A stretch of 57,905 nucleotides of DNA, counting the filler, from Sluysia triapertura (Eukaryota): NCBI GenBank assembly GCA_046118255.1. It is 4 parts of 4 records of this genome, joined end to end, with 100 filler letters (N's around TTAATTAATTAA, not from the genome) between each part and the next. Parts side by side here need not be neighbours in the genome. Positions count along the whole stretch, not along the records: positions 26,627 to 44,746 come from JBJNIA010176362.1; 3 more parts are not named here. One strand, written 5' to 3'. This document shows positions 2,696-44,746 of this stretch, piece by piece. The notes below the pieces were generated by a model. It made no database searches and was not told where the DNA came from. It worked only from the letters and a program-made list of their open reading frames with translations. Within the stretch, counting starts at the first letter, position 1, and every line of letters begins with the position of its first letter. Position numbers and translations under genes: made by a program.

Positions 2696-3562
2696 TTAAT
2701 AATTCATTAACGACAGTTATGCGACTATGCTTTAATCAACACTCGACTGTAATTGAATTTTATTCGTAAATGTTCAGGTTTCAACTTAACACAGATAAAT
2801 TATAATTATTAATAATCCAATTGTAAATATTTAGTTCAAAATTTACTATTACAACCTATCAATCTATCTTAAACCCCTATTTAACTTACAAATAAAAACA
2901 AAGAATAATTTCAATAAAGATTTATTAATTTAATTATAACTAAAGATAATTTTTATTAAAAGAATTTATAAATAAAATTTTTACTATAATGTTAATATTT
3001 TCAACTATACGCGGAAAATAATTCTTACTCTGAATCTTTCAGTAAATGATTTCTGGTTCTCGCAGTGTTCTTCTAAAATAATTGCTGAAATGTTGTCGTT
3101 TTGAATAGTACTTTTTGTTTTGAATCGTAAATTTTATTGAAATTCCAACATAATCGTAACTCCTTTTATATTATTTCCAATAATTAACTATTATAGTCAC
3201 GAACATAATATTATAATAGTTAATAATTTCAGATTATTTAATAAATTTCAGATTATAGTCACAAATATAATAGTATCGAGTTAATTATACAAATGAATTA
3301 TTTTCACTATATATTATTACCTTCTTAGTTGAAAATTAATTAGGTTATTTTATAATAATGAGTTTTACAAAAATGAATATTATTATGTATGTATCCGAAT
3401 GTATGTATTGCATACCATTAGTTGTGATTCATTCACAATTCGTTTACGCAATATTATCATGTACATATTAAATTACGACTTACAATGCATCCACGCAATG
3501 TTATTGAATTCGTATATATTGAATTAAGATGTGTATATTATATTAAGATGTAATTGAATTAA

Positions 3563-3700
3563 CCCTTTCAGCCCCGAATTTTATATCTGGAGGAAGCTAA
3601 AATTATGCTCTTCGTATTACTTTAGTAGGATCTTGCATAGCAGTTGTGTAAGAGAAAAAATCGCCATTGACGCCATATAGCGGTCCCGGGGCTGAAAAGG
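3563..3700. mobile_element. piggyBac-type MITE (138 bp)
   Basis: TTAA at 3559-3562 and 3701-3704. 14-bp TIRs CCCTTTCAGCCCCG / CGGGGCTGAAAAGG (13/14 match) begin with CCC, as in piggyBac. Confidence 0.9.
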
Positions 3701-3933
3701 TTAAGATATCTTTACAGTTGTAAGTGAATTAAGAGTGAATAAGATGTATTTACATTATTATTAATATTATGATTATAATTATTATTGTTATTGCTTTGGT
3801 TGATTTGTGATTTTAAAATGGTTGTAAATGTTTTTAATCTTGTAATTTGGTAATGTTGTTATAACTTTAAGCTCTATTGTCAATAAAATATTCCTTTTAT
3901 GCCATTTATAATGAAGAAGTTTCAAAAGTGAAG

Positions 3934-5376
3934 TTAAGATACCGTAAGTAACCTTAATGCTGGCTTTAAGAATAAGTTGCTTAAATCTCTAATAAAATTT
4001 ATCAATCTGCTCTCTTTGTTAATGGAGCATCGTGTAAACGGATTATGAACGTCCTTCAATGAACTAAAAGTCTTAAAGTGCTTACCCAAGAGTTGGGTAG
4101 AATGGACTTCTACAGTATTAGGAAATTTATCTGCGTTTAATCTTGTCAATTTTAACATACATATATTTATTACAACCTCATGCAAAAACAACAAAAATCT
4201 TTTTAATATATAAGTTTGAAAATTTAATAAAAATACATTAATTGGTATGTATTTAATCACTAAATGTCTAAGATTCAAATTAGAAGTTTTGTCTTCTTCC
4301 TCATCTCCTCTTTCTCCAAGTTTATTGTTGCATACCACACTCTGTTTGGCTTCACGAATCCGTTCGGTAGCTTTATAAATGGAATTAAAGATTAATGAAT
4401 ATATTAAGTTAAAACTCACGTTGATTGTTTCAATATTAGAAACGTTAACAAAGATGAACTCAAAATCTACTACATCAGTCAAATCACTCATAAACAACTT
4501 TGATTGTAATACTTTATCTAAGAATTGATATTGCATCATTGATTTCAGACTTTTTGTTAAGGTTTCTTAAGTAGAGTAGAACACAAATTTTAAGGCGTTT
4601 AAGTAAGTATGAATCACTTCTTTGTTCAAGATCCACGTGAAAATGTCTAAAACCCGATTGATCATGTCTTTGAACGTCCTGATATCTGCTTAATGAGATT
4701 AAATTACGAAATTGTTCTTCTGAAATGTACGTGACGATTAATTGATAAGTTGAAACTTGAAGCATTCTATGATTGTTCTGTAGAAATTGCAGGACATCGA
4801 GAATTTTATGTACGTATTTGATTATCATCATAATTTCGTTTCGGTATATAATCATGTGCACATAATGAAGGTGAAACGATCGGATCATATGATAACTACT
4901 AATGATTGACTTATATGAGTATGATAAAAATTGGTTTCTTTTCTTTAGATCACAATTGTTGTCTACATCGACAGTTCTATCAGGACTAAATCATAGTCTA
5001 GAATTCGTGAATAAGCTAATACTTTACTGGGAAATATTGGTTCAATTAAATACTTTATAATTCTACGGAATTGAGGTACCTCGACATATTTTACATCGAA
5101 TTCTGAATAATTATCATCAATTAATGTGCATACAAATTTTAGTTCCGAATCACGTAGTCCTGATCTAAATATAAAAACGACAACATTTATTTTTAGAGCT
5201 GATGTTTCACAAAGTATGACTTTGTCATCAAGATAACCGAGCTGCGTTTTAGAAAAATTAAAACTGTTTGATTTAAGAAAAATAGGATCAATCCATCTCG
5301 TAAATAACTGTTTGCGGATCACTTCCATTGTTGTTACGTTATCTTCTTTAGTTTTAAATTTTTGAATTGTCACCAT
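3934..5376 (-). pseudogene. Disrupted ORF of about 480 codons, product unknown
   Basis: Three abutting or overlapping minus-strand ORFs (5376-4963, 4888-4514, 4539-3934) with coding-like composition, separated by stops and frameshifts. No family recognised. Confidence 0.55.
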
Positions 5377-5621
5377 GTTTGAAACGAAATTAAATTATAA
5401 ATATTTACAACAATAAAGTGATAATAGTATTTTCTGTTTTTCAACTGTTACTGTTTTTTTTGTTGTTTAATTTTTTTAACTCTTTTCGATTCTATTTTTG
5501 TGACTCGTCGCAGTGTTTTTTAAACCAGTTTAAATTGTGAACATTTACAATTATTATAATTATGTTATTTTTCTCCTCTCACAAATTGGTCACCACTAAA
5601 GCAAGTTGTTTTAGTTTGTTT

Positions 5622-5798
5622 TACTATTGGTTATCCAATCACGACGTCAAAAATAATTATTTACATAGAATAGTCGTGATTGGATGATACATAGTATTGA
5701 AGTACAAAATTAATTTTTGATGATTTACCATCATCAATATTGATATGTTAATAAAATGGTGCATAGAACGTCAATATTGATGATGGCAACAACAAAGG
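5622..5798 (+). ncRNA. Pair of long pri-miRNA-like hairpins (candidate)
   Basis: Perfect inverted repeats 5633-5645/5673-5685 (13 bp) and 5728-5743/5771-5786 (16 bp). Both extend outward using G-U pairs on the + strand, and both loops are 27 nt. Confidence 0.5.
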
Positions 5799-5883
5799 TA
5801 GTTTTAATTATATTTATAAAATATTTTAGTAATTGATAATAATAATAATAATAACAATAATATTGTTATTATTATTTTTTTAA

Positions 5884-6704
5884 ATGGAAATAAATCGCAT
5901 AAATCTTTCTTTTGATAACTTACACGATCTTTTCTTTGAACTACTTAATTTTCTACATATAGAATAAAAAAAGAACAAAAACAGATGACATGCTGTGAAG
6001 GAGCAACGGTAACGAGGTTTACTACGTCTCAATTATCAATGAACAAAATTACAGCAGCCATCTAAATGACCGTATGAAGTAATGAAAATTACCGACACTA
6101 ATTAGATTCTACCAAATTAAGATTCATAAACATTTGTAGTACATGCCAATAGATGTAAGATAGCACCACATAATTTAATTTAATCACGTAAGGATACGAG
6201 CTATTATCGACATGGGAACTACTACATCTGTAATGCATTATAATTTCCTAACTACCTGGGAACTTCTGTTTATGGATCCACCGCAAACAACAATTTATAA
6301 CGTGGAGCGAATACAAATTAATATGAATAGAGTAATACATGGTCATTTAACTATATTGGATCCACACGTAAATGCAATACATTTGGGAAAACTCTCCTTT
6401 TGATTTGATAATTTATCTAGATATAATTGATAAATTAGATGCTATAGTAATACATAGTAAGTTTGGTTTTATAAAATTTCCACGATGTGCATAATTGATA
6501 ATTCCACAAGTTGTTGTTCCGCACATTGATGATGAGATTACTTTATATGAAACTCCAATTCATGTTCCGACACCTAGTTTCGAATCCATTGATCCCGTAA
6601 TACCTTCGTTTCGATTATCTGATATGTTATGGGAACGGTCATCTACTGACTCATCGCTGTCATCCGTAACGAGTGAATTTTCGGAAGCTCTGTTGACACG
6701 ATAA
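5884..6704 (+). pseudogene. Decayed retropepsin-like aspartic protease ORF with Pro/Ser-rich tail
   Basis: Frame just before the 6212 ORF reads VRIRAIID(M)GTTTSVM, matching the retropepsin ALxDTGAxxS motif with a single ACG>ATG change. Several stops and frameshifts. No RT follows. Confidence 0.6.
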
Positions 6705-6747
6705 TACTTACTTTTACTAATGCAAACAATCATAGTATTAAAAAATC

Positions 6748-7717
6748 ATGTTGAGCATCATTACTAATATTAACAGTTGAATTCTTATCTTTAATTAATT
6801 TTGTTAAATCTATAAATTTTGAGAAAGATGAGGAATACAGAAATTTATACGAGGCTTTCAATAATGGAAAATAATAAAAATTATTGATTACAAATATTTA
6901 TAACGAATATTTACTTAGAACCACTGTTAATTGGTAAACCACACCAATATGCTTATAGACCAATGTTAATATCATTTGAATTGGATACGAAACGAAATAC
7001 TTAAAAGGTGCGAAATTTGGCGCAAAATATTGCAACAAATAAATCGATAAACAATTGTACCTCTAAAATCAAAGACAGTAATGTTTTATCTAATGGTAAA
7101 ATACATAACATCGTCATATTAATCTATAAGCTACTTTTTATTTTTGCAGTTCTTATATGCAATATGGATCATATTATATATAGTTGATTTTTGTAGAAAA
7201 TTATGTATGTTCTCAAACAATGATTACTGTAGTACAATGTAATACACATGATGTATAGGTTTACAAAACCGAATATCTTGAATTTCGTAATTATGACACA
7301 GAAGTTATATTCAAGTTAGATTTACATGCTTAAAACCTGAGAGACTTAATTTCTTGCTAAAAGACACATTATTGCTAGAATATATGTAGCACCGGCGAAA
7401 TTAGAACAGTTGTATTTTGCATTAAATGGAACACGGAAATACTTATCATTACCAGAAATGTTAAAAAATGATTTGCATTATTAATATTAATTTTAGTTGC
7501 AATATTATTTATCATCGCTTTGTCAATAGTTATAATCATTATGTTTGCATCAAATAGATGTAGATATCCATGTTTACCTCCAAATAATGACAATGATGAC
7601 CGATATACTATTCCACATTGAAGTAATTTAGAACCACCACCAGGATTTCCATTAGAATAACCTCCTGTTTACGAATATGCAACTGGTAATCACTCGCCTC
7701 TGATATATGGAGACTGA
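6748..7717 (+). pseudogene. Decayed single-pass membrane protein with Pro-rich PPxY tail (env/glycoprotein-like)
   Basis: From 7472 the frame reads FALLILILVAILFIIALSIVIIIMFAS (TM), then NRCRYPCLPP...LEPPPGFPLE*PPVYEY (PPVY at 7661-7672). The upstream part is Cys-containing but broken by stops. Start is approximate. Confidence 0.45.
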
Positions 7718-26626: not shown

Positions 26627-26643
26627 ATTAATATTAATATTAA

Positions 26644-26703
<60 letters not shown>

Positions 26704-29700
26704 TGTAATGTATAATTTTACAAAAAGAAAATTGACAAATTTCTTATGAATTTTAAAGATTTTAGAAATATACCCTATTCATTTTTTAGTTACTTTATTC
26801 AACGTAAACAAATCAAATAATAATATTTTCTAATTTGAAATATTCATTAATCTTCGTTTATAGAAATAGATCGTATAATGCGATTATAAAAACAAAATAA
26901 AAAATATTCAAGGAAAAATAAAATTGATTAACAATTTCATTATTAAAATGCAATAATTTATAATTTATAATTTTGAATTATATTTTGTTTAAGCAACTGA
27001 ATTTTTTTTTGTAAATTTAACATTGTTTCAGATTATCTTTGTTTTTAATTAAAATATTGTGTCTTTTATACATGTACGCTGATATACTTTAAATATATTG
27101 AATTATAATAACAATTCGGTTGTATTTAAAGTTTTGTTTTATAATAAATACACTCTAAATCAGACAGATTACAAAATTGATTTATTTTAAATTTCTGTAT
27201 TGCAAAAAAAATAAAACTTTGTAATTATCGGTCAAGTTAAACAATAAAATTAATAAAGATTTCATATATTCACGAAGTTTGTTTTAAATATGAGTGTGAA
27301 TTTTTGAAACAATTCTTTTGTTTTTAACATGTAATATTTTACAATTTTGTCAAATAATATTAACAAATATCATATTATAGTTCATTACAATTTTAAAAAT
27401 GCTTGTCAACTACTGTAAAAAAAGGTATATAAATCACATAAAATGAAAAGTTATCGAAATCATTCAAAACTGATACATTAATGAATAAGAAGTAATTCTA
27501 TCAATTCATATAAATAGTAAATTTGTTAGTGGATCTTTATGCAACATATAATACTCACAATTAAAATTCAATTAAAACAATTTTATTAGTAAAATAATGT
27601 TTTTCTAAAACTCAAATACTATTAAAATTGAAATAATACAAAATATTTCATATTATTCTTAAAAATTAATTAAATACTGAAAATTATCAAAATGCAACAC
27701 AAATTCCAAACTCATACCTTTCATTTTTTTTGTGGCAGGACAATTTTAAAAATTAAAAGTAAGAAAAAATCAAAATTTTGAATAAATAAAATGTTTGAAA
27801 TGCTTCACCCTGTAATTTATGCAAAAAATGTAAATAATACAAAATATTCATTTTATTCGAAATTTCGAACAGTGGAAAATAATTCTTTCAACATCAACAC
27901 TATCAATTAAAGCGAGACTTAGTTTTTATTTAAATTAAAATAATAATTCAAACAAATTTCCGAAATTCCTGATTAACTATTTCTTAAACAAAATGAAGAA
28001 TTAATTCCGTTTTAAAATAAAAAAATTAAATTTTCACTTATTTTGTACGTATAAAATATTTAAACTATAAAAATATTATTATGGTTTCTCGGATGAAATG
28101 TGTAGCTAATCATGTGGTGGTCAGACTCATTACATCTGATATTAACGCAAATTTAATCTTTAAACATCCTTTTTTATTTTCAATATTTTAAACCATCAAA
28201 AGTAAATTCATTTGTTTCATTTACACATTATAATGAGATTATAAACCTGGCAAACAAAGCTGTAACAAGTTAACTCAAACACATAAGAATAAACACGTAA
28301 CACATATAAACTAAAATATAAATTAAATATTATACTCAAAGAATGAAATCGTTCAAAAGGATGTACAGTTTCTCTGACATTACCGAATAAAACTCCAATC
28401 AAGTTCATTACGATTCCCAGATGTTTTCTGCCATCAAATTTAATAAAAGCATCTATACTAATTGGCACTAATATTTATGTCAAGCTCACATAAATATTTC
28501 TTCACTTGATAACGTTAATTTGATGTTCAAATTCATCCATGTATATGTACGCTATAAGGTAAATTTCTTCGTTATTTTTATCACCCAGATTTTCTTTAAC
28601 TTTGCAAGGTGCACGTGAAATCGTTCTTTGATTGTACAGTTGCATCGCTACCAATTATAGTAGTTCCATGGTCTGATTGATTTGCATTTCCAACTTCAAT
28701 TTTGAGTTATCATTGCATTTTCATACGGTAAATTTCTAGTAGTTATAAAGGCTCTCGCCATCGGCCTTTAATTCATAGACTTATTTAAGTCTACATCCTT
28801 TATATGTTTCCTAAAATAATCTGGATCCTAACATTTTATAATCCGTACGAGTTTTCCAAAAATTTAACATAAAATGACGTATCATCTTTTTTATTACGTG
28901 ACAAGTCCTTAACTGCTTGTTTAAGCGCCTTTGCAAACATTTTAAATTTCTTAGAGTTCATTTTATTAATACTTTTGACCTTTGCTCCTTATAGAAATAT
29001 AGATTCTTTTTTATTGTTATCAAATTATCAAATAAATAATTAATGATATTGATGCATTAAAAATAACAAAAATGCTTCACTGATCTATAAATCAAATACA
29101 CACTGTCAATCTTTTTAATTTAATTTATTATTATAGTATGAATTAATGTAAAATACATATTAATACACAAATACATATAATTTCTTACATATAAATTAAA
29201 ATTTTGTTAAATGTGTAAATGATAAATATCATTAAAGGAAAGTGATATTTAATAATATCTGATCAAGTCATAACTTGAGGTATTACTATAAATGCAGTAT
29301 CGTAAAGAAAATTATGAAATAAAATCCAATTATCGAAGGATTTTGACTTTATTCATAATATAAATATACACCAAATTGTTTATGCAACTACGACATGATA
29401 AATTATTTATTTACAAAACCCTTGTTTAAATTAAAATTCTTCATAAGAAACCAATTTAATAAAATAGCGTAGATTACAAATTGTATGACAGATATAACTA
29501 AAATAATGTGCATTAATTACTTTCATCCAAATCGCTTAAGCATAACACATTAATACAAAATTATTTTAAACCGGAAACTCCAAATGAATGCACTTTTACA
29601 AATGAGTTTATGTACTTTTTTCATGCTGCATCTTTATAAATATCCTACTGAATTTCACTCATTTAGAAATCTGCTAAATAATCAATAATTGTGTAAAGAG

Positions 29701-31141
29701 GATATTAACCATCAACTATTAATATATTATCACCCAATAATACTAATAGTCGTTTCAGGTAATTATATGTAATGCGAATATAAATGTTTTTTGTTGCAAA
29801 CATATAACATGCAATGTCCAAATCGATACTGACAAATAAAAAAAACTTAATCAAAATAAATACATAATATCTGTTGATTTATTTGTTGCTGTTTTACGTT
29901 TATAATGAATAGTGCAGATAATATTTGACAAACAATTATAGTCATGACAGCAGAATCGAGAGGAAGCATAAGCAAGCAATGAATATTTACACATTTACAT
30001 ACATGCATAACTAAATGAGTTAACAAAAAAGTACCAAATTCAGTAAAATAGTACAATAATAACAAAAAAATGGAGCAATAACAACAATAATAACAATAAT
30101 TTTAAATATACGTTAAATGAGTATTACAAATTTTGATTATAAACTGAGATTAAAGTGTTTAATATCATAAAAATTGGTTTGTGTTTTTTGTATATTGATT
30201 TGGTATAAGATTGTATAAGATAGTGTTGAAGTTTCTTCAAGATTTTATTAAAAAATCCGTATTAGATTATGTTAATGCTTATTATGTTAATCGAGTTTAT
30301 TATTAGAGTTCGTTATACTATTCTTTATCAAATTTAACATATTATTATTATAATGGATCAAAAGAAGACAGAATCGACGAAAGTTGGTTCAATCCTCAAG
30401 ATACAGTTGGTAACAGAGAAGTATAAATATTTTAGTTATAAATCAAATATTTTATAGGTTGGGCTTTGTTTGTGATTAATAGCTACAATGATGTTGTGCT
30501 TTTTCATACTCTTAACTTACGGCAAAATTAACTTAACTTAATTTTGAGTAGGTTAGGTTATAGTAAACGAGTTACAAAGTAACGTTTGCGCTCTTGCAAT
30601 TATAAAATGACAATTATTAACCTGAAGTTTACCTTTTATCTTTTATTCTTCAGTTTACTTTATATGCCTTAACTATGTACATTAATTTTATTCCTAAATC
30701 TTAATACAGAAGCCTTAATTCTCAGAAATTAATTTAATTACACTTAAAAATGTATCTTCTTAAATGGATCTTAATAAAATTATAAGCCAAATTTTATTTG
30801 TTAAAAGTTTGGATTTTAATGAAATTATTGTAATTTTTCCGCAATTCACAAAGCCAATAAATTTTCAAAATTTATAATTTTATAACAAAATATATTGTAA
30901 GAAAAATAAATAAGATATTTTGAAATTAAAGCCTTTTCTAAAATTGATTTGATGCTCAATAAATCGTGGTTAAAATTTATTAAAGAATGAATTTAAGTGA
31001 GATTGTAAGTATAATGGTCCTAAGATAAATTAAACGTACTAATTTTTTATTGGCCAAAATAATAAGTCCAAGATAAATTTGTGTAGTATCAGTTGGTATT
31101 GTTAAATTGTATTATTAACCTTACAGAATAAAAGTATGTAA

Positions 31142-31190
31142 GTGAGTTCATCGACGTATCTAAGCTTAAAAGTTATGGCTAGACTGTCGG
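31142..31190 (+). repeat. Dispersed repeat core GTGAGTTCA...CG(T)ATC(C)TA; also at 23708-23745 (+) and 50315-50358 (-)
   Basis: gtgagttcatcgacgtatctaagctta / gtgagttcatcatcgtatctagtctta / gtgagttcacctacgatcctaggcta. Confidence 0.6.
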
Positions 31191-31399
31191 GTTTTTAAAG
31201 AAATTTAATATATAAATTCAATGGAGGTGAATGATAAGTTTTTTGGACTTGAAGAAGCATATTTATTATTATACTTTTTGTTTCTTATGTATGAGTGTGA
31301 CCTAATTTCTATTATCTTTTTCTAACTTTATTATCAACTGCAAGGAATTACAAAACATGATTGCAATTAATTTATTAAAATAAAGAGAGATTTTACGGG

Positions 31400-32180
31400 G
31401 GTTTCTTTATTAAAGAGAACCTATTAAATATATTATCGAAATTTTAAGAAATTTGCGATGGTTTCATCTTATAAGAAATATAAACTGTATACAAACTATC
31501 GCCTAGCTTGCTATCACTGTGGATTCTGTACATATTATTATTATGTTTCATTGAAATATTTATCTTCGTTTCGAATTTTTTTATTATTACTAAAAGATAT
31601 TCAGGAATTCCGTAATGTAAGCATTTTGAAACTATTGTCATGATTTTAATTATATTCTTGCTTTTATTGGCAACCAATGTAATTTCTTAAGATAAGACGT
31701 TACATGAGATCTTCTTCCCAATTGGAAAATTAGTATTGCTGCTTGATTAATTATTAATTGTAATTTTTTCACTTTTCTATATGAAATTGAATGCAATATA
31801 CCATTGTTAAAATCTATGTTGCTAGTTATCAATGAATTGACAAAATTTTCAAACACGCGATATTTTATTTAATTGATATTGACACATTTTAACAATACAA
31901 TTAATATTTTCTTCCATGTTCATTTTTGAATCCATATAACAACCTATATTTCTTACTTTTTGCTTTGTATCTAGTTTTTTACCACCTAAAATTAACTTTG
32001 CTTCACTTATTTTGGTATTGTCGCTATTTTTATTACCGAAGCTTATAAAATCTGACCTTAGTATTTATTTTAAAACCATTTTATCAATTCAGATACTAGT
32101 TTTTCTGTTCTTTGAATAGCATTTTCCATGTTGTTCATTTCAAATTCAGTATATATTTGCGCGTCATCGGTCTTATATTT
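31400..32180 (-). mobile_element. L2/CR1-group LINE 3' remnant
   Basis: DDAQIY; VRNIGCYMDSKM; SLITSNIDFNNGIL...KLQLIINQAA...HVTSYLKKLHWLPIKARI. Confidence 0.9.
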
Positions 32181-32975
32181 TAAGATCATAGTTATGATAA
32201 TAATTATCAATACAACGATACATTAAGTTGAATATAAAGATAAACTTGTTTTCAATAAGAACTTGTGACACAATGTACAACACGTTAATGGTACATCAAA
32301 AATCAATGTCAATAAGATATTTAGAATAATTTCTTAATGACAATTAATTTGATATATAATTTTATTATGCATGCTCATTATAATACATAGAAATTTAACT
32401 TTATAATAAAGAAAATTAATTAAATCTGATGATTTTACGTTATTTACGTTGACGTGTTTCACACTGTCTTGGTGTTCATAACATTGATACATTTCATGAT
32501 TGTGTTTTATTATCTATGATACCACTTATACGCAAACATCACAAGAAAAGTTATTGATTAAAAATGATTTTTAAAACAATTCTAATAAAATTAATTAATT
32601 TTTTTGTTAAATTTTATGTATTTTTTGTAAAACTTTATAAAATATTGATCCCTTTACCTTCAAGCTGCAATATTCTTTCAGTAATTTTATTTTCCGACAA
32701 CCACACAACAGAATTTTGTTCATACGTGAGTGTGTATCGTATGATAATCTATTTTTAGTCATTTCTTTATGAACTGAATTTGATTTAAGTTTTATAATTA
32801 GTTTTAAACTTATGGAATAATTCTTAGTAAAATCATCTTTGATTAATTCTGGACGCACATTCAGAAATTTTATATTATTTGGATCTTGACTTAACTTAAA
32901 TATATTGTTGGGGTAAAAGGCCTAAAAAGTGCCAAGTAGTGTAATTGAATATATTGAAAATGAAATTGTTAGACG

Positions 32976-33047
32976 GGGCTGATAGCTCAGTGGTAGAGCA
33001 TTCGCACTGCGCATCGAAGGTCCCGGGTTTGATCCCCGGTCAGTCCA
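32976..33047 (+). pseudogene. tRNA-Cys-like sequence (pseudogene, or SINE/TRIM head)
   Basis: 7-bp acceptor stem gggctga/tcagtcc and D arm TAGCTCAGTGGTAGAGCA are present. The anticodon arm is 18 nt and aberrant, and the T loop is GTTTGAT. (TTA)n follows. Confidence 0.8.
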
Positions 33048-33062
33048 TTTTAGGAAGTCTAA

Positions 33063-33102
<40 letters not shown>

Positions 33103-33104
<2 letters not shown>

Positions 33105-33230
33105 GTTGGGATGTAGGCTTAATGCGCCATGTAGTAATCTAAAAATTGTTAGACAGGAGTGATATCCCAGTGGTACAGCCATCAGTCCATCACTTCTATC
33201 CCCGGTCAGTCCATTTGATGAAATCTAACA
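33103..33230 (+). repeat. Second, degenerate tandem copy of the 32906-33064 unit
   Basis: tgttggg..aggc.taa..gcca.gtagt..aaattgttagac..cagtggta..atccccggtcagtccattt..tctaaca. Confidence 0.8.
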
Positions 33231-35327
33231 TTTGGTGAGCCCACATATCGAATACCCTTCTGATGTTGAATTAAATGATTTGTTATTATTTTTTGCATGA
33301 AAATACAATGGCTTTTATGGACGAGGTAAGGGAGAAATACCAGCAGTGTGACCAGCAATATTTATAGTGAGAGAGTGTTTGATTGTGAGACTTGGATTGA
33401 TTGGATAATGAAAGAGTATAAAATAAAAATTTAAAAAATTTTTCAGCACAATCACACAACACAAAAATTTACAGACATCGAAGATTCATGCATATGGTAA
33501 TAGTTTTGTAATTTTTATTATTTTATCATTTTATTATTTCAAGAAAAATAAAATAAAATAAGTAACTTTTTTAGGGAAAATATTTATCTTACTTGATAAC
33601 AGTAATTTTGCTGTAGTAAGAAAACAATAGTTTTAAGATAAATAAATTTGATTTTTTTTCAGAGTTATCATTTTGAAAAATTTTCAAATATATATTTAAT
33701 TTTAATTTAAATATTCATAAATTTGATTTTTGCGAGGATCTCTGAAAAATTTTTATAATTTTTGATAGTCAAATAAAATAAAATTACTTTGAAATATGTT
33801 AATAATATTGTTATTTTTATATTTTATAGGAAATTGATAAATATGATTTTTGGAGGATCCCTGCCCAAAACATTTCAGGTTAAGATTATCTGAAAATATT
33901 TCAGCAGTATCACTATTTTGAACTTTCTCGATATTGATATTTTTAGAGTTGTTGCATCACTCCTGGTTTCTTTGGTTATTATCATATTATTATATACGTT
34001 ATTCTTAATCTTGACATTTTAGTCATATTTGGTATTGTTTATGGAGATTTATATGATAGCAATTTGTATTTTATTTTTGTTTAATCATTAAATTATTGTC
34101 TTGTTATTAATTTGATCTTCAAAAACTCAATTTTGGGGTGAATAATTATCATTATTAAAATAAGAGAATTACTGATAATTTATACTTAATATAGTGAATA
34201 CTTAAATTATTGAGATTTTATTACAGTTAATTAAATTGATATTGATTTAGCGTAATTAATAATTTTCAAAGATGCAACAATTTTTGTTGTTGTTATTAAA
34301 ATAAAACACAAATATGCATAATACAACCTAACAAATTTTGAAAATTTGTAAATCAAGAGTCACACAGGCTCATTGAAAAATTTTCTACTAATTACTATTT
34401 TAGACTTAAAAAATTCGAAACAGTACAAACTGCATCTTCAACTAATTGAAAATTTGCAAAACTCTAAGCATGTAATATTTTGCAATACTAAATTATAATA
34501 GAAATTGGATTAATATTGTGATTTTCTTGGATCTGTAATCGTGAAATAAACAATAATAGAGATATTTTTCATAAATTTTACTCAATTAGAGAACAATTGA
34601 TATCAGAATCTATAAAAAAAGACAAAATTAAAATGTAAAACAATTCCACATTGAATTATTTACCATCTTGCGAAGTTTTTTGATATTATAATATGGAGCA
34701 GGTTGCATAAAAAAGATCCGCTATCTGTGCAGTGTGACATTTTAAAGGCTTTTTAGAATTTCCTCTTGAGTCCTCCCTTCCTTGTAAATTATGAGGTCCA
34801 TAATTTTCTTTTAGAAAAATACGTAAAATTAGTGCATTATGGAACGTGCATGTGTAGAGAAGAGAATAAGTGTGTGTGTAGATAATTGTGAAGAAGTGTA
34901 GAAATATCTATTTATATTTGAGAAAATGTTATTACTTTACTTAGTCTGTTTATATTGTTAAAGTTTTAAAATAATTTTTGAAGGTGTTTTATTAGAATTT
35001 TTTAAATAAATATTTCTACACTTGAATTGAGATTTTATTCCAAGGAGGTTCCATTTAGTTTGTAATTATAGTTTTAATTAATCATTTTAATCTTCTATAA
35101 AGTAAAATAACGTTGTCTTGAATATTTATAAAATATTAAAATTAAATTATTTTTTAATTTTTAAATTATTTTAATTAGGTTTGATATTTAAAAATTTATT
35201 TTTCAACCTACAAATTGCATCAATGATTGTTTTAACTTACAATTTCCTTATTGAAATGGGTCAGTTGAATTTTTAGAATTCTACACCTTTCTACTTCATT
35301 TATTTTCAAATTGAAGTTATAAGTTTT

Positions 35328-36060
35328 ATGGGATCAAAATTTCAAATGGATTTTATTCTTGGAAATAAAATATCCGAGAATAATTATGCTTCTTCATCAA
35401 AAGGTTGTGATTTAAGTGATGAAAATATGTTACCTGATAGCAGTTTAAGTCCAAGTCAGATAATGGAAAGTAATTTTGATACATTACATTATAATAATTT
35501 TAAAGAACATAATCATTTAGAATCAGATACAAAAATTCGAGTTTTTGATATAGAAGGAAATCAGTATTATGTAGACGAAAAGCATTTAATTCATGATTTA
35601 AGTAAATTTGAGTATTTTTGCTGAAAATATTTTAGATATTAATTCAATGGAAAAATCTAAGTGCAGTAAAATTAAAGTTGAAAGTGATGTAAATGAAGAA
35701 AGTGAAACAAACAATGACATTATTGATAAAATGTCTGCTGAATATGATGAAGTTTCAGATAATGAGAGCTTGAAAGAAATCACAGAAGCAGCTCATCTAG
35801 CTTATATTGAATGGAAAATTGACAAAATAGAACAAGAAATAAATAAATTAAGCGGTAATCCGTTAGCAGTTGTGATAAATTCAGCATGTAATTTGGAAGT
35901 TTTAGAATTTGATAAATTTGAAGTTAAAGAAGAGCGTTTTGATCGTAGATTACATTTGGATTTATCAGAAACGGAAACATTGGATAGAAGCCGAAAATTA
36001 CGAATGAAGGATATATATGATCGTTTCAGTGAAATTAATAAGTGGGTTAGTAATACGTAG
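35328..36060 (+). CDS. Hypothetical spliced protein (exons 35328-35601 and 35636 to about 36056; may continue)
   Basis: A 34-nt GT-AG intron (35602-35635, phase 1) joins the 98-aa and 150-aa ORFs in frame. Acidic protein, no family recognised. Confidence 0.65.
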
Positions 36061-36216
36061 GCGTGTCTCTTAACTTGTATGTTTTGAATGATAGTATTAC
36101 CTAGATTTATATTGATATGAAAATTCAATTGTCATTTTTAGAGTTATTGTACATTATATGAAAATCAAGTATTTAGCATTCTTAAGTAATTTGATATTTA
36201 TTTTAAAAATGTGGTA

Positions 36217-36358
36217 CCGTATTTTCCGGTACATTTTAGGAGGTGGACCTTATCCAGAAAATACGGTAATAGAAAACAATAGTCGCATCATATTTAGTCG
36301 TAGGATATTTCAGGATGCGTCATACAGTCAGGTATACCTTACAATCCGGAAAATACCG
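36217..36358. mobile_element. pogo-type MITE related to the 49316 element
   Basis: TA-CCGTATTTTCCGG ... CCGGAAAATACCG-TA, with an extra internal right TIR ending at 36266. Confidence 0.75.
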
Positions 36359-37289
36359 TATCGTGTATTCACGTTTTTCTGCTGTACCGACAAGAGTATA
36401 AATTGTATCTTAGCAATATTTTGCTATTGTTCCTTTGAATAATTTTTAAATTTTCATTGCGAGGCACCAATGCTTTTACTTCTAAAAAACTTGATCAAAA
36501 TTTATTTCATGTTATCTATTGATTTTGATGTTCATTTTTGATAAAAAGAATAACTAGAGACTGTTCCTTTTATTTCTGTTTATTGTATTATCTTTTTTTC
36601 CTATATAAATAAGCGATTTCATAGTTTTTAAATTATATTTATAGAATAGACTGTACTTTTATTTCTTAATAAAGATTATTCAATTTATTAATGTTTCGAT
36701 TGTTTCAGACATTGCTTTGTTGCGCAGTCAAAAATAGGCAATTTTCAATGAAAATTTTTGAAAAGATGATTTTTAGTATTCTTAATTGTATATCTTTTTA
36801 ATATCATCATTGCTAAGTATTATATCGCTTTTTAACCTTTATTAAAACATCGTACAAATATTCTTCAAAGATCGTAATACAAGATACAAACGAATAATTT
36901 TTCTTTATATTATCAAAACTTGAGTATTATCACACTTAACCACTCTATCTTTGGTGCTACGGGTTCTGGGTATTTTATCCAAAGTCTCATTCGATACTTT
37001 AGAACTAAATTTTGACCCATCAGTGTAAGCGTTGTGGGTTTATTATAAGCATGAAATGATTATTTATTGGATTTAATTTTACTGCAAAGATACTTTGGTT
37101 ATACCTAAACTACAAAGCAAATAAGCCTAGAAGAGTTCGACCTAACAAGAACGACTTAAGTCTGAACGACAGCGGCCTGATAGGATTTACGATGCAAAAA
37201 TAGAGTCAAATAAAGGTTAAGATAAGGATTGTCTGATAATTTTAGCTTATTTAAATTATTAAAATCTATCAATAAATTTAATGATTTTG

Positions 37290-37661
37290 AGTTAGCCTTT
37301 TTACGGTCTAACTTGTTAATAAGATATTAAATTAGCCTTTTACGGTCTAATTGTTGAAAACGAAATTGTTGATTTTATGATATTAAGCTAGCCTTATTAC
37401 GGTCTAGCGTTGTACAAGATTTTAGCAATTAATTAAAAATCAAATTAAAGTATGAAGTTTTATTACCACAACTCAAAAAATAATTTATACAAAAGTAATA
37501 TACACTGATAATAACAATAATTATTTTTGTTTGGCTTAAATTCTAATGAATTTAGCTTACAAGATTTTAGATTCAATTTAACTTATCCTGTTACGGTATA
37601 AGTTCAAAAATAAAATATTAGTTTAAGTGTGATTTTACTCCTCCCTTCTTACGGTGAGGAG
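37290..37661. other. Array of five covarying hairpins with a shared bulge and loop motif
   Basis: Pattern stem-CC-T(N1-2)TTAC-GG-T-stem' at 37290, 37330, 37387, 37580 and 37638. Confidence 0.9.
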
Positions 37662-38129
37662 ATTAAAAACCTTATTAAAAATAAACTTACCATTTTCATG
37701 GATTTTCGATTAAACGCTCTGTGAATAATAAGCTACTGCTGGCAAAATTGTGTTGAACCCACAAAATTTGTTGGGTTTTATACCCAATTTTGTTTTCAGT
37801 CGCCATATTATTCATACGTGTATAAATTAATTTAATTAAACAAAATTTGCTTTTATTTAAACCTAAATTATAATTAAACGAAAATAACTTTTATTTAAAT
37901 TTAAATTATATGCTATTTTAATTAGTTAATTTTTATATAATATTTTAATTTTTTACAATAATATTTTACATAATAATTTTTTTAATAATATTTTACAATA
38001 ATTTTTCATAATAAATGTATAATATATATAATCATAATAAATTATTGAATAATAATAATGTAAAATGTCTATTAAGGATAATAATATAAAATGTCTATTA
38101 AGGCTGCTGGACAATACTCATTCTCACAA

Positions 38130-38520
38130 ATACAATGGACTAATAACGACATTAGTGATTATCTATTTTGTAGGTGAATCAATCGAACAACTTATTTTCA
38201 TAGTTTTATAATCAGTACTTGAATTTGTTGAGCTTGTTGAAAACGTCTGCTACAATTATTATCACTTTCAGTAAAAGCTCAATCAAATATTCAGAACTAG
38301 GTTTATTTTCTACTAAGAAATAATAATTTAAATTTATGATTTGGGTTTTATATTGACACGGAGAAATAATACAAAATTGAAATTGATCATCTAAATACGA
38401 ATTTGTCTTTTTAAGCATTACTTGTTTAAGCTTAGATGAATTTTGATATGGAACTGTTTTGAAATGAAACACTTTACTACTCGTTTTTAGTAATTCGTAC
38501 ATTATAACACAAATCAAATT
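38130..38520 (-). pseudogene. Degenerate paralogue of the 56129-56572 unknown gene
   Basis: VFHFKTVPYQNSSKLKQVMLKKTNSYLDDQ versus VFHFKTDHSQNSSEIKHLIIKKTKEYLDDQ; KTQIINLNYYFLVENKPSS versus KTQIIDLDYYFLAENRPSS. Confidence 0.85.
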
Positions 38521-38935
38521 TTTTTGGATAATTATCTATTTTTTATCTTTTAAATGTTTTTAACTGGTATATATAAAATTTTTGTTTTACACAAATCTTT
38601 TTAATTATTTATTTTTGCTCTAAAAATTCGTGTCTGTATTCATTGTGAAATGTTTGATGTAGTTGACTCACAGTGTATGTCGACAACAGTGTGATTCCTT
38701 GATTAATAAAGTTTATACTGACAAAGAAAAAATGTTTAATTGGTTAATCAATGGGATAGAAGGGTAAGATTTTTATTAGCTCATAATTTTTATTTATAGC
38801 TTGGCGATAATTACAGCTTTACAACAATGAACTGTCAAATGATGACAGTTGAAAATGAATTAAATAGAGACATTGTTCTTAACTGGGTTAGCAACCACTA
38901 AAATGATTAAAATTTTCATGTTTTATAATGCTAGT

Positions 38936-38936
<1 letters not shown>

Positions 38937-39005
<69 letters not shown>

Positions 39006-39008
39006 GTA
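38937..39008. repeat. (TAA)n microsatellite, possibly the 3' tail of the minus-strand LINE
   Basis: Repeat is read directly; the tail role is inferred. Confidence 0.9.
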
Positions 39009-39009
39009 A

Positions 39010-42000
39010 TAGAGTTAAAGTACATAATAAGAATATAAGATAAATAATAAAATTGCAAATGGTAATAAAAATAATATAATAATAAGAAAAATTGATCAAA
39101 CACAAATTCTTTAAACTCTTATCTTTCTTTAAAAGTTTTCGTCTTTCTAAAAAATACATGATTTTCTGTTTTTGTGACTTATAAATTCTTTTGCATTGTA
39201 CATAAATATTAATAAAAATATATAACGTAGTTAAAAATGTTAAAAGGAATTGATAAAAGAATGTAATTTAGGATGTTAAAGAATTTCCATTTTAAATGTA
39301 ATGTTTTAAACCTGATACTGAAATGATATAAATGTTGTGAATGTTTAAAGATTGTGAACTTGAAATGTTTTAAATAAAATTTTGAAATGTACGTTTAATG
39401 GTTTAGATGTAAATATAATTTTAATGTTATGAAAGTGTAAGTTTGAAATGTTTAGAAATATCTAAAGTTTTAGTGAATCTGAAAAAGTAAAATATGGAAT
39501 GTTATGAATTGTGAGTTTTCGTGTGTAGAAATGATTTGAATTTTGAATATGAAGGTTGACCACCACAATGTACAAAGAGTGTAAAGAAAATGTGAAAGGG
39601 AGCATGAAATAACACAAACAAAGGAAGGAAAAATACAGAAATGAGGAAAAACAAGCTTTAAAAAAACAGAAAAAGGAAGGAGAAAAGAAAGGTAGAGAAA
39701 TGAAGAATGAAATGAAGTGGAAATCTGCTGTTATAGTAATTTGAATGTTTAAAAGAAAAAGCATTAAAAATGTTTTTGTTTTATTAATTATAAAACAACA
39801 GAGGGTCAAATTAAAAAATACCGGGAATATGAAAAAATAAATTGAATTAATTAAATTAAATTAATTAAATTATAAAGGAAAGAAAAAAGAAAGATAAAAG
39901 AAAACACCCAAAGTATGGAATAGGAAAGCCGCCAAAGGTGAAAAACAATTTGGAAAAAAATAGGGACGCCCGATAATATACAAAAAACTTTTACAATGCA
40001 TGGGTTAAAAAATCCAATAAGTGAAAATGAAAATAAAAAGTATTAATAATTGAAAAGGTTCCTAGGGTAAAAGGAAGCTAGGAAGAGAGCAAAGTAAGAT
40101 AAAGGAAAATACCCAGATGAATAGTAGAAAGGGATTAAGGAGTTATGGATGCCTAGATAAAAGTACAAGAATTGAGAAATTAGGAGTGCACAAAAAACAA
40201 ACATGTTTCTGTACAATATATACATTTTACAATTATTTACAAAATAAGGTAAAAGGAGGGAAATGATTTGGTAAGATATTGTCTAGGAAAGTTTACAAGT
40301 AGAAAGTTCCAACAAAGTACAAGTGTTTACAAAAGAGAGGTATTACGTGTTTAAGAAGAACTGTGAAGAGAATGATAAAGGACGACTCCAGGGACAGCTT
40401 GATACACTGGTTCACCAACTCAGTGATATCAGTTTTGCGGAAACTGATTCGAGATCCCATGTACTGAGTGCGCCAGCTACAAATGTGTCAAAAGAAACCT
40501 GACATTTGGATTGGAGTTTCTGCCTAAGATCAGAGTACCTAGTAATATTAAGAGACTGGGCGCCCTAAATTTGTCACAGTTATCGATAGGCGACATCAAT
40601 CAGAAAGAATTGGGTCGAAGTGGTACCCTGTGCCTGAATGTCGGGTCAGTAGAAGTATTTTACATGTCTTTCTTAACTGAAAAGCCATTTTGTACAGGTT
40701 TACTAGAAAGACATTCTAGTATCTTATTATGTCAAACTGTACAACCAATAACAGATTGAGGGTACAGACATAAAACATGGGCAATCATTTCACGTTCAAA
40801 CCCTCACCAGCGACAAGGGACATGAACGAGTTTAAAGAAATTAATAGAATAGATCCAAGTCTGATTGTTCAGTTGTAAGAAAAATGGACAACCGGATAAG
40901 TCCACAAAACGTCCCTGGATTTAGTGGGATTTCCAAATGTTGCTATTGGTATTATTATTCAGTTCATGATGATATTTCCCCACTTTCTCTTTATGAAACC
41001 GATTTAATATAATCTCACCAAGGATGTCGCACGTAATGCAGAGTTTAATTTTGTCCTCGGAATGAAGGAAGGAGATAGAAATTCGACATTTACGTTGTAG
41101 ATTGAGGATGGACCGCCAAATTTTGGTGTACCAAGTTTGGAGTCGTGCGTGCCTATCAGATTTAACCCAATTTAACCATGATATAGCATCAGATAGATTT
41201 TCGACTATCAGTAGCAACTCGGACAGTTTCATGAAAGGAGAGGTTACGGATAAGGTCGATGCGAATACTGAAAAGTCGGAAAGCGCAGACTACATTCTGG
41301 CACACATAGTCGTCGTGGGAGAGATCAAGCCTAAACTCCCGTAATTTTTGTGCGCAAATAAGAAAGCATTGTTAAGAAGGAAATTCTTTAAACCTAAGAA
41401 ACCCTTGAAGAGATGGTTGACATTTTCATCGTCTCCGACAGATTGAGGAAGGTTCCAGGATTGTCTGGAATGAGGACTGGAAAGGATTTGTGTGTTTATA
41501 ATAAGATTGCCCATACGGAATGGTAAGCGCGATTGGATGAAGTTGCGAAACATAAAGAATTTCTTTCGACAAATTAGAGTAGAGTATTTCACTTTCTCAG
41601 CAACCGCTAAGTTTTCCTCAAGGAGATCAGACAGGTTGCACTTTTTATTTCACCAAAGGGATTGTATTGTCACCATCTTTCATTCATAATGGGAGTATTG
41701 TCAATAAGAAGAGAAAGAGTGGTGTCGCCCAGAATGTTGTGGAAATAAATGCATTTACTAGGGCGGAAGATTAAGTTGGCCGACTTTGTATGCTCAAGAA
41801 TATAATTAAGAATTCGTTGCAAGTCCCCGTGTGAGGTAGCAATTAGTGCGATGTTATCCGCATTAGCAAGATAGTAAAGGAAGTGACATTTCACTAATTG
41901 AAATGTAGTCTTTCCGAGAGTTCGTGAACTTTTGAAACAAATAATCATTGACCAAGCAGAGAAGGGTCATAGGGAGATGGCAGCCTTGGTTCATTAATAA

Positions 42001-43990
42001 GATTGTTACAGTGTACGAAGTGCTACTATCTTCGTAAAGATCCCTAAGAAGATTGAGCGTTTGCTGCTCCAGCCCCATAAGGGAAAGTGTGTGCCAGATG
42101 AGTTGGTGGGGAACAGAACTGAAAGCATTAGTTAGGTCGATGAAAATTACATAGATTAAGGGATGCAATGATTTCCTGAAGTGAGTGTAGCAAAAATTAT
42201 GCTCGGTGCAACTATCAGAATGAAATAGCGCGGTTCGGTGATTAATGATAAGATTGCCGCATATAACCAGGAGAGAAGTTTTTTGTGAAGACTCTATATG
42301 TTACATCGAGTACTGCAATTGGGCGCCACAATGAAACGTGTTAGATTTAATTATAAGGAAAGTAGTAAAGGATTTCCAGGTGCGAGACAGTTTCTCAATA
42401 TCAGAAGGTAGAGGAATTGTCCCGAGGGATCTACGTTTTTGATTTGTTTGAACGTAATTTATTGGACCCTAGAACAGAATTCTTACAAAACTTCAAGGTA
42501 GCCATAATCTCAATAGGATCGTTAGTATAGGTATCGAAGAAGTATGACAAAATACCGATTTGTGATGGGTCAAAGGAGGGATTGTAATAGTCACAGATCT
42601 CGGAAGCAAAAGGAGTATGTGGAGGGAAAGGAGTTCCAATAATTAGTTGAAACGCCTTAGTTTGATTCAGCTGAAAGATTTTACCCAGGTCCTGTTGAAC
42701 TTCCTTATTGCAATTTTGAGACTTTTTAAATTGTGATAGTATGTTCGAAAACTTTGAGGGAAACATTTTGTCCAGAAAAAGTCTTTACAAATTTTGTTAC
42801 ACAACGACTAAAGAGAAGGATGAGGGTGTTTCGCTTTCGTGTCGGATGGAAGTATCAGAGTGTGGTCAAGACATTATAAAGTGTTTCCCTTGTGGCATCA
42901 ATATTAGGTTGGAAAAACATTATAATGTCGAGATTGAGTTTATATTGCAAAGCAATATTACAAATAATGGGACTGCAATCTTATATGTAAAGTCCTGCTT
43001 ACTAGGGTACACTGGAATTGCAGTTTATGCGATCATGACATTTTTGAAGAAGTTACATAACAAATAGAGATGACGTGGAAAAGTATTGAAAGGATCAACA
43101 ATATAGTAGAAATTATTCTCATTGTTGAATATGACGAGGACCCAATGGTTTTCAGTATTCAGTACCCAGTAAAAGTGTTGCCAGCTAGCACACTTAGGAA
43201 AATCAAAGTTGTTGTGAAAGGTTTCCTCATCGTTGAACATGGCAAAGTTTGCAACGATGGAGTCAAATACAAGACAGTTAGGGTCCAAGATAAATGCATT
43301 AAAGAAGCCATGATCGCCTTCAGGATGGTCAATCTGACTGGTGGGTGGAATCAAGATCATTAGCAGTTGGAGTAAGACAAAGATTCTTTGGTGCTGAATG
43401 TTTAAAAGATATTTTAAAAGATATGTTTAAAAAGTATTTTATCTTCAGACATTATTGTTAAGTTTTAATAGAAAGGTATAATCAAAAGTTATTATCAAAG
43501 AGAAGGGAACAGGAACACTTAAGAATGACCTTTTTTCCTTTGAAATTGTGCTTTTTAAGCTGATGTCACCTAAGACTACCACGGTGATTGGGATTAAGTC
43601 TTTGGGTAATCCCGCACGAATTGCAACAGACTCTAGTAGTATATAGAACTTGTATGTCATCATCCGGAATGAGTGGTAGCGCAGTCGGTTTCTTGCCCGC
43701 TCCACGAATGTCTTTCTAAAGAACATTCGTTTGTTCAATATAGGTCAAGGAAAATTCTTCCCAGGTTTTAATAGTGCCACAGGTGCATTTCACTTTCAAT
43801 TCACTGAAGAGGGTAGTAAATTTGTGTTTGCTAAGGAAGTTTCTGCGTACTTCCTTGCAGTGAGAACAGTTTGTAAAGTTAGTCTCTTCATAGTACAATG
43901 AGCAAGGGAACATTTGAGATAAAATTTATGAGAATTATTATCAATCTTAGCTCAGTCTTCTAGGTCAAAGGTATTCTCGACGGACGTCAA
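39010..43990 (-). mobile_element. Decayed NeSL-like RLE non-LTR retrotransposon (Zn fingers, Ulp1 protease, RT, CCHC/RLE, long 3' UTR)
   Basis: NHWVLVIF...YIVDPF and Q...DCSPIIC (C48 protease); IFIDLTNAFSSVPH, QGCHL and LANADNIAL (RT); CRW*GFEREMIAHVL...*HNKI and FVAGALSTWD (RLE). Coding part about 40300-43913; ends approximate. Confidence 0.88.
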
Positions 43991-44017
43991 TAGAAGTTTG
44001 GAGAGGGCGTAAAAGTA

Positions 44018-44082
44018 TTGTAAATAATATCATCCTAATGATTTTGTATATTTGTAAATAATATCATCCTAATGATTTTGTA
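44018..44082. repeat. 31-bp direct repeat, two copies (period 34)
   Basis: ttgtaaataatatcatcctaatgattttgta. Confidence 0.95.
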
Positions 44083-44191
44083 AAAAATAATAATAAATTC
44101 TAATAATCACAATTTATTGTAAAAAAAAATAATAATTTCTAATTTTATTGTAAAAAATTTTTATTTTATCATAATTATTGTAAATAGTCAT

Positions 44192-44512
44192 AAAACGGAT
44201 ATTTATATAATAATAATCTTGTAATAAATAAAACGGATAACAAAACGGATATATATTGTTTATTATTTTAAAAATTAGAATATATATATTATAATTGCTG
44301 TTATCATTTATAAATAATTATTTTATTCGAAAAAATTTAATTTACAAAACGGATATTTAGACGGAAATCCTTATCTTTATTTTATGTTTATATTCAATGT
44401 TTTTGACTAATATATTTGTATGATTTAAATCTCTCTTCAAAATCGGATATTTATAATTATTTAAATTAATTTTTCAACAAAGGATATTTACATTTTTAAA
44501 GCGAGTATAAAA
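44192..44512 (+). promoter_or_regulatory. Cluster of AAACGGATA-like sites upstream of a TATA box
   Basis: Exact AAACGGATA at 44193, 44231, 44243 and 44347; variants at about 44360, 44441 and 44479; TATAAAAGG at 44506. Confidence 0.6.
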
Positions 44513-44746
44513 GGTAAAAATTTATTAAAACTCCACACACAATAATTGTTAGCAGTAAAAAACGTTCAAGTTGCAGAACTTTTGGATACTACGAGTTCAG
44601 TTATCATATTTCGATATAAATTATAAATTTGGGGAAAACGATTTAATTATCTGGATACAATCAGTTCACTCTTCACATTTTCGATACACAGTAAAGACTT
44701 GGAAAATTTATTTTGGTTAAAAAACGAAATTATCTGCAATTGGGTT

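Follow-up and report, generated by a model that had tools for sequence, protein, structure and literature searches.

The window, i.e. the whole stretch of 57,905 nucleotides from Sluysia triapertura, includes a piece of 18,120 bases (positions 26,627 to 44,746) on whose plus strand five short hairpins lie close together. Most of this piece has a G+C content of 15-30%, with a richer block at 40100-44100, and ORFs are few. RVT_1 and Peptidase_C48 were the only Pfam domains detected in it. Both are part of a decayed non-LTR retrotransposon (LINE) situated on the minus strand at 38937-44100 (its G+C-richer portion being 40100-44100), where the Ulp1/C48 domain is located upstream of reverse transcriptase (RT). 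The element contains frameshifts and all three stop codons occur in it. Ulp1 preceding RT is the domain order of nematode NeSL and Trichinella Utopia elements (PMC4640811), and the same order was observed in an intact relative of 1,135 residues encoded by a metagenome contig. Exhaustive protein search retrieved RT relatives with at most 46% identity among the best-scoring hits. Word-index search with the RT fragment gave no homologues, and none of ten ORFs of the piece had an entry in the protein collection searched.

Among public runs, one DNA run and no RNA run contained the region. Depth of coverage was summed over contigs of this DNA run that were at least 80% alike and were mapped to 35200-39800; the resulting values are not copy numbers. 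Unique flanks have a summed contig depth of about 20-28, and a unique contig covering 36273-37112 has a depth of 16.6. The 3' part of the LINE (39050-39511) reaches depths of 3,000-6,800, and an (ATA)n microsatellite with about 49 units marks the end of the element. The whole element at 38937-44100 is consistent with a high-copy LINE truncated at its 5' end, for which a trinucleotide repeat is either the target or the terminus.

Further upstream, a tRNA-like sequence is found at 32963-33066 (Rfam hit at 32976, 50.6 bits), Cys-like and with an odd anticodon loop. A second, deleted tRNA-like copy occupies 33143-33232, 180 bp from the first. Both copies are flanked by the same inverted repeat of about 10 nt (AATTGTTAGAC ... 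GTCTAACATT). Arms of these flanks (TTAGAC/GTCTAA) resemble arms of hairpins 1 and 2 described below (TTAGCC/GGTCTAA), possibly by chance. With its LINE, tRNA-like element and microsatellites, the piece is eukaryotic nuclear DNA, possibly of a nematode. Mitochondrial insertion was rejected on account of many variant contigs and joints of single-copy depth at other nuclear loci.

Two plus-strand ORFs (98 and 150 aa) at 35328-36060 could be joined by a putative 34-nt GT...AG intron at 35602-35635. They contain no Pfam domain, and no homologues were found (exon 2 was searched by word index). Depth here is 3-6 times the baseline and several joints are internal, so that the two ORFs represent a repeated family of small size, not a conserved gene. 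At 36215-36360, a 15-nt inverted repeat (TACCGTATTTTCCGG / CCGGAAAATACGGTA) is present with one left arm and two right arms. It is situated in a stretch whose depth is about 7-8 times the baseline and is thus a MITE-like element of low copy number.

A separate high-copy element (37083-37236, plus strand) adjoins the array. It has a degenerate A-rich tail and depth of about 36,000 (36,297 at 37116). Direct repeats of 8 bp, TAATTTTA, border it on either side (37074-37081 and 37237-37244). A B-box-like sequence, GAGTTCGACC, is located about 50 nt from its start; no tRNA match was found. This element is probably a retroposed SINE or LINE 3' fragment, separate from the hairpin repeat. Insertion with an A-rich tail and 8-bp target duplication indicates that retroposition machinery has been active here. 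A 22-mer of this element gave no hits in metagenomes.

Hairpin geometry and stem covariation

The preliminary description of this locus had listed five hairpins with unrelated stems and a shared bulge and loop, and reading of the sequence found all five in their places. Hairpin 1 (37290-37313) consists of a 6-bp stem, a CC/GG clamp, a 7-nt loop ending with TTAC and an extrahelical T. Hairpin 2 (37330-37352) has a 6-bp stem and 6-nt loop, and hairpin 3 (37387-37408) a 5-bp stem and the 7-nt loop TTATTAC. The stem of hairpin 4 (37580-37604) is 7 bp long and unlike those of hairpins 1-3, with a 6-nt loop, while the 6-bp stem of hairpin 5 (37638-37661) is G+C-rich, unlike all others, and carries a 7-nt loop. 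Clamp, TTAC and bulge are the same throughout. The common plan of the five is a Watson-Crick stem of 5-7 bp, two C-G pairs and a T(N)NTTAC loop of 6-7 nt, with an unpaired T between GG and the 3' arm in every case. Read on the minus strand, the hairpins have a bulged A, two pairs and a GUAANNA or GUAANA loop. They are spaced by 40-57 bp, with the exception of a 195-bp gap between hairpins 3 and 4. The conserved core of 11-12 nt (about 45% G+C) is the G+C-richest part of the AT-rich setting.

Three additional features were noted around the hairpins. In the gap, TTTTATTACCAC at 37456-37470 resembles a decayed core (CCTTATTACGG) with unpaired flanks and might be a dead unit. The same gap contains a hairpin of another kind (37536-37560), with a 9-bp stem, a bulged T and a TAAT loop. 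Downstream of the array, a terminator-like GTTGGGT...ACCCAAT stem (37770-37788) is followed by a T-rich run.

Using a regular expression on both strands, the core CCT-N1-2-TTACGGT was found five times in the 18,120-base piece, always on the plus strand and within a span of 372 bases; none occurs outside it in the piece. In 500 dinucleotide-preserving shuffles, the mean number of this specific core was 0.014, and that of a generic CC-N6-7-GGT core with at least five flanking Watson-Crick pairs was 0.022, compared to five observed. The suspicion that matches might be as frequent in shuffled sequence (0.014-0.022 expected) is thereby removed: the five-hairpin array is real and far above chance expectation. 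A covariance model built from the five units (R1) recovered only these five in the piece, and the hit ranking after them had an E value of 0.44. At Rfam gathering thresholds, only the tRNA at 32976 matched in the piece, and nothing that matched the hairpin motif appeared at E up to 10. The lone overlapping hit (RF02842 RefA1, 37619-37686; 13.4 bits against a gathering threshold of 94, E 9.3) is at chance level. Hammerhead and other ribozymes were rejected as well, since their core motifs are absent and no Rfam hit was obtained.

Predicted RNA folding of the five hairpins yields -5.8 to -12.1 kcal/mol and recovers the drawn structure on either strand. Predicted DNA folding is weak in comparison (-2.9 to -5.1 kcal/mol). 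We agree with the preliminary description that strand and nature of the nucleic acid, RNA or DNA, are undecided, as both strands fold and G-U pairs are missing.

To describe variation between units, the five hairpins with their flanks were aligned by MAFFT (alignment A1) and proved to be in register throughout. Of 40 stem cells, 39 pair (97.5%) and six of eight pairs vary on both sides, values for pairing and covariation that were reached by no shuffle. When the partner was slid by 1-3 columns, pairing dropped to 25-52%. Two C-G pairs, bulged T and TTAC are invariant in 5/5 units, as had been noticed before. That the stems differ, completely so in copies 4 and 5, and yet are paired is borne out by the same figures. 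No G-U pair exists among the 30 variable-stem pairs, and the sole unpaired cell in A1 is the outermost position of copy 3.

A GATWTT leader (GATATT or GATTTT) is placed exactly 10 nt 5' of CC in copies 1, 2, 3 and 5. It is GATTTT in hairpin 1 (37283-37288, plus strand; alignment A1 and repeat family D1), and the leaders of hairpins 2, 3 and 5 lie at 37323-37328, 37379-37384 and 37631-37636, respectively, all on the plus strand in A1. In hairpin 4, the plus-strand leader (37563-37568) is shifted upstream by another 4 nt. An internal plus-strand duplication spanning 37276-37431 is formed by unit 1 (37276-37334) and unit 3 (37372-37431), with 79% identity over about 60 nt including flanks, which shows the units to be homologous copies. 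Between copies 1 and 5, all six stem pairs are swapped with leader and core unchanged. Such a swap looks like block replacement, or like very strong constraint on leader and core, and unlike gradual drift.

Since stems differ yet pair while loop, clamp and bulge are fixed, the folded single strand appears to be under constraint, and plain duplication followed by decay does not account for the pattern. On this point our analysis sides with the preliminary description. One could object that the palindromes were made by mutation and not selected, either through templated quasi-palindrome correction or through birth as inverted duplications around a constant core, and that the hairpins have no function. 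Perfect Watson-Crick pairing and whole stems swapped with no intermediates would suit such an origin. Moreover, 267 contigs share at least 99% identity, so that the family has the appearance of being young and would in any case have decayed little. Nevertheless, templated correction would remove the extrahelical T, which is invariant, and leader and core are conserved where stems are not. We know of no process that puts one constant core of 11-12 nt at the centre of unrelated palindromes. Mutational origin is therefore considered improbable.

Copy number and modular arrays

The five hairpins are contained in a block of very high summed contig depth, approximately 37237-37690 on the plus strand. 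Depth is about 230 at 37201-37233 and about 1,000 at 37237-37243. It rises to 16,249 at 37321, between hairpins 1 and 2, is 5,059 at 37605, past hairpin 4, and falls to about 500 at 37710, a roughly tenfold drop beyond hairpin 5. By 38588 it is at baseline again. Mean depths of consecutive bins are 34,048 (37202-37355), 7,943 (37356-37509) and 7,547 (37510-37663). Right 3' of hairpin 5, where depth falls about tenfold, there is an A-rich stretch (37662-37686, plus strand), possibly the plus-strand 3' tail of the repeat.

Altogether 2,356 contigs aligned on 4.6 kb, falling into identity classes of 267, 452, 763 and 874, the first being the contigs at least 99% alike mentioned above. Twenty-four contigs start exactly at 37372, that is at the start of unit 3, and are preceded by unlike sequence. 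In joints of single-copy depth, the end of a hairpin-3-type unit (37405/37408) is followed by the start of a hairpin-2-type unit (37322/37323) with 18-23 different letters between them. Another joint connects 37319 with 37578, i.e. hairpin 1 directly with hairpin 4. Hundred- to thousand-fold excess of depth, many variant contigs and alternative orders of modules show the hairpin unit to be part of a repeat family of very high abundance. This family is partly young and occurs in modular arrays with variable spacers, of which the present array is one locus. We are highly confident that the hairpins are modules of a high-copy repeat under structural constraint at the level of the family.

Very high copy number of the hairpin unit is new, and it places the structure in a repeat instead of a unique regulatory platform. 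The preliminary description had proposed a multivalent platform, a packaging signal, localisation element or protein sponge in one host transcript. Five same-strand hairpins with a common loop and bulge within 372 nt speak for this. Transferrin-receptor mRNA offers a parallel, as five iron-responsive elements (IREs) in its 3' UTR likewise form an array in which a single bulge and the loop are fixed and the stems are unrelated. Moreover, a plus-strand ORF ends 1.2 kb upstream (36060) and a weak minus-strand ORF ends at 38212. In IREs, however, the bulge is a C, the upper stem has 5 bp and the loop reads CAGUGN, and they reside at a single locus, whereas the hairpins here have a different motif and are highly repeated. 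Summed depth of the repeat exceeds that of its flanks hundreds to thousands of times, other loci carry units with other spacers, and both neighbouring ORFs lacked homologues and Pfam domains in our searches. Given the high copy number elsewhere, a function connected with the repeat itself is more probable than one in a host transcript, and the platform is now very unlikely.

Thousands of short units in which the box is constant and the neighbours vary are also what a cluster of small-RNA genes would show, each gene having a fixed motif for promotion or processing and a body of its own, as in nematode 21U-RNA loci or snRNA-like genes. The leader of hairpin 1 resembles an Sm site (GAUUUUGA) with a terminal hairpin behind it. 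An Sm-like match is missing from the other four units, though, pol III terminators are absent, no Rfam small-RNA match was obtained, and at 40-57 nt the units are packed more closely than known small RNA genes would permit. We give this explanation very little credence. SL RNA genes, suggested by ACC|GUAA in the minus-strand loop, were rejected for equally tight spacing and lack of an Sm site.

Arrangement of the units deserves comparison with satellites. In a tandem or dispersed satellite-like repeat, the conserved dyad-symmetric box could be the site of a chromatin or centromere protein. Short spacing of 40-57 bp, variable spacers, mosaic arrays and a conserved box inside otherwise divergent units, the G+C-richest part of an AT-rich setting, all agree with this. 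The precedent is found in Meloidogyne holocentromeres, whose monomers of 40-90 bp share one dyad box (PMC8097292, PMC13404089). The 19-bp box repeats of this genus are similar to ours in being short divergent units in mosaic dispersed arrays of an AT-rich genome, with one small conserved box tied to dyad structure. A weak hint is that LINEs of the Ulp1 and RT type are known mainly from nematodes (PMC4640811) and nematodes are holocentric. On the other hand, the Meloidogyne box has about 80% G+C (PMC8097292), as opposed to about 45% in our core, a comparison made by described properties and not by letters. It also forms the dyad itself, whereas here the box is the loop with its bulge and the dyad arms vary. 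Only five units, with a 195-bp gap, are present at the locus. We regard a satellite with such a protein site as rather improbable.

We looked for the hairpin in other sequence collections. Model R1 detected nothing in 520 kb of metagenome loci, and the motif is absent from the LINE loci on contigs of two RT relatives. Scanning for the TAG...CTA form of the hairpin produced isolated hits, 48 among viral contigs and 61 among prokaryotic genomes, not above chance for 16 fixed bases, and no array was among hits from these viral and prokaryotic collections. One pattern-scan hit, near position 76 on the minus strand of a Clostridium arbusti contig, is a terminator-like hairpin with TAGCC-TTTTAC-GGTCTA in an 18-bp A/T stem; we interpret it as a chance look-alike. 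The doubled TTACGGTCTA pattern had at least 120 hits in metagenomes, mostly unrelated tandem or CRISPR-like repeats, and hairpin geometry was found in none of them. In literature, the letters of the motif were met in vector sequences only. The hairpin element would work in the manner of known protein-read hairpins, but it was assigned to none of the families compared, which were those of Rfam and the systems named in this work.

Possible partners of the hairpin

When loop, clamp and bulge are fixed and the stem is arbitrary but always paired, this is the signature of a hairpin that a protein reads by its shape and some of its bases. As the units exist in massive numbers, the repeat itself is the simplest beneficiary of the structural constraint. 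The best overall reading, which we propose tentatively, is that the hairpins are modules of a young abundant repeat read by the protein that copies it, perhaps as the tail of a non-autonomous retroposon partnered by a LINE. Constant loop, clamp and bulge would be the surface contacted by the copying protein, and the stem would need only to pair, its sequence being arbitrary. In its most likely form, the hairpin would be made of plus-strand RNA, lie near the 3' end of the non-autonomous retroposon and be bound by reverse transcriptase of the partner LINE. Arrays might form when the tail module is duplicated in tandem or when short 5'-truncated copies insert into earlier tails. The retroposon-tail mechanism specifically is possible, and we hold it with reserve.

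Known 3' tails of stringent LINEs of the L2 clade and of their partner SINEs, such as those of eel UnaL2 and zebrafish ZfL2, provide the closest model. They too have a short hairpin in a high-copy eukaryotic repeat, situated just 5' of a simple or A-rich tail. The single bulged base of the UnaL2 3'-tail hairpin is required (PMC1636434), and zebrafish L2 ORF2 is specific for the loop but recognises the stem only in general, as a helix (PMC4176376). In our repeat, high depth stops just past hairpin 5 and the A-rich stretch on the plus strand, and the hairpins are predicted to be markedly more stable as RNA than as DNA. The neighbouring high-copy element bears witness to retroposition at this place, and a decayed LINE is present within the same piece.

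Several observations do not favour a retroposon tail. Known LINE/SINE tails have one hairpin per copy, common to an identifiable LINE, in contrast to the array of swapped-stem modules with several hairpins per locus seen here. The one LINE of the piece (40100-44100) lacks the motif on both strands according to model R1. A target-site duplication was looked for around the hairpin block and not found. Finally, zero G-U among 30 variable pairs is unusual for a selected RNA helix, and a DNA palindrome fits equally.

The last point leads to the possibility that the hairpin acts as single-stranded DNA, recognised by a structure-specific nuclease or recombinase of the HUH type (Helitron, IS200/IS605, REP/RAYT, CRESS origin) or by an integron-like one. 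Recognition or nicking would then take place at the extrahelical T and at TTAC on the 3' edge of the loop. As G-U is missing and Watson-Crick pairs make up all 39 paired cells, the two strands are equally able to fold, and the repeat is abundant and arranged in arrays. An extrahelical base on an arbitrary stem is the hallmark of ssDNA hairpin substrates, as in those of IS608 TnpA and integron attC. TTAC is the cleavage tetranucleotide of IS608, although there it lies outside the hairpin and here in the loop. REP/BIME and IS200/IS605 hairpins resemble ours also in number, hundreds to thousands of short hairpins per genome, and are recognised by shape plus few fixed bases including an extrahelical T, as ours may be. 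The likeness to IS200/IS605, drawn already in the preliminary description, is one of analogy. These hairpins are, however, prokaryotic and act as ssDNA, whereas the present host is a eukaryote with LINEs. No ORF for a Y1 HUH transposase (TnpA/RAYT) was detected in the 18-kb piece, whose Pfam domains are those of RT and Ulp1 only.

Other HUH systems fit incompletely as well. Helitrons are very abundant eukaryotic elements, often associated with tandem arrays, and in their 3' hairpin pairing matters above sequence. They need, however, this hairpin 6-15 nt 5' of CTRR, a 5' TC and insertion between A and T. At the required distance, CTRR is absent after all five hairpins, TC is missing where the repeat block begins on its left side, and stems here are A+T-rich. 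All loops end with TNTTAC, exactly TATTAC in hairpin 3, which we take to resemble the 3' half of the CRESS/geminivirus nonanucleotide. Origins of these viruses have the complete NANTATTAC nonanucleotide in the loop of a G+C-rich stem, accompanied by Rep, as opposed to TNTTAC alone on A+T-rich stems, and no Rep gene was found in the 18-kb piece. DNA hairpins are also predicted to be weak (see above). To our knowledge, Y1-HUH hairpin repeats have no precedent in eukaryotic nuclear genomes. An ssDNA substrate is therefore judged unlikely.

The preliminary description had compared the hairpins with the coat-protein operator of phage MS2. Likeness of layout to MS2/Qbeta operators holds loosely on the minus strand, as far as it concerns a lower stem, a one-sided 5' bulged A, two pairs below the loop and an A-rich loop. 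The MS2 loop, however, has 4 nt (ANYA) and not 6-7 nt, its clamp is G-C instead of C-G, and phage or levivirus context with coat and replicase genes and an Rfam match are lacking here.

Returning to the repeat as such, we see a small chance that it is a eukaryotic nuclear counterpart of bacterial REP/IS200-type elements, or a hairpin box marking chromatin such as holocentromeres. In the former case, thousands of shape-coded hairpins would be spread or maintained by a structure-specific ssDNA enzyme. In either case, swapped stems would be a feature of specificity or diversification and not drift.

A striking array of covarying hairpins can be a single locus of a species-specific repeat, and copy number should be checked before regulatory claims are made. 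If loop and bulge are a protein handle, this repeat is a natural experiment in which many copies with arbitrary stems present a fixed recognition surface. It would then be suited to finding the partner, be it LINE ORF2, an HUH enzyme or a chromatin factor, and to studying shape-based recognition in a eukaryote.
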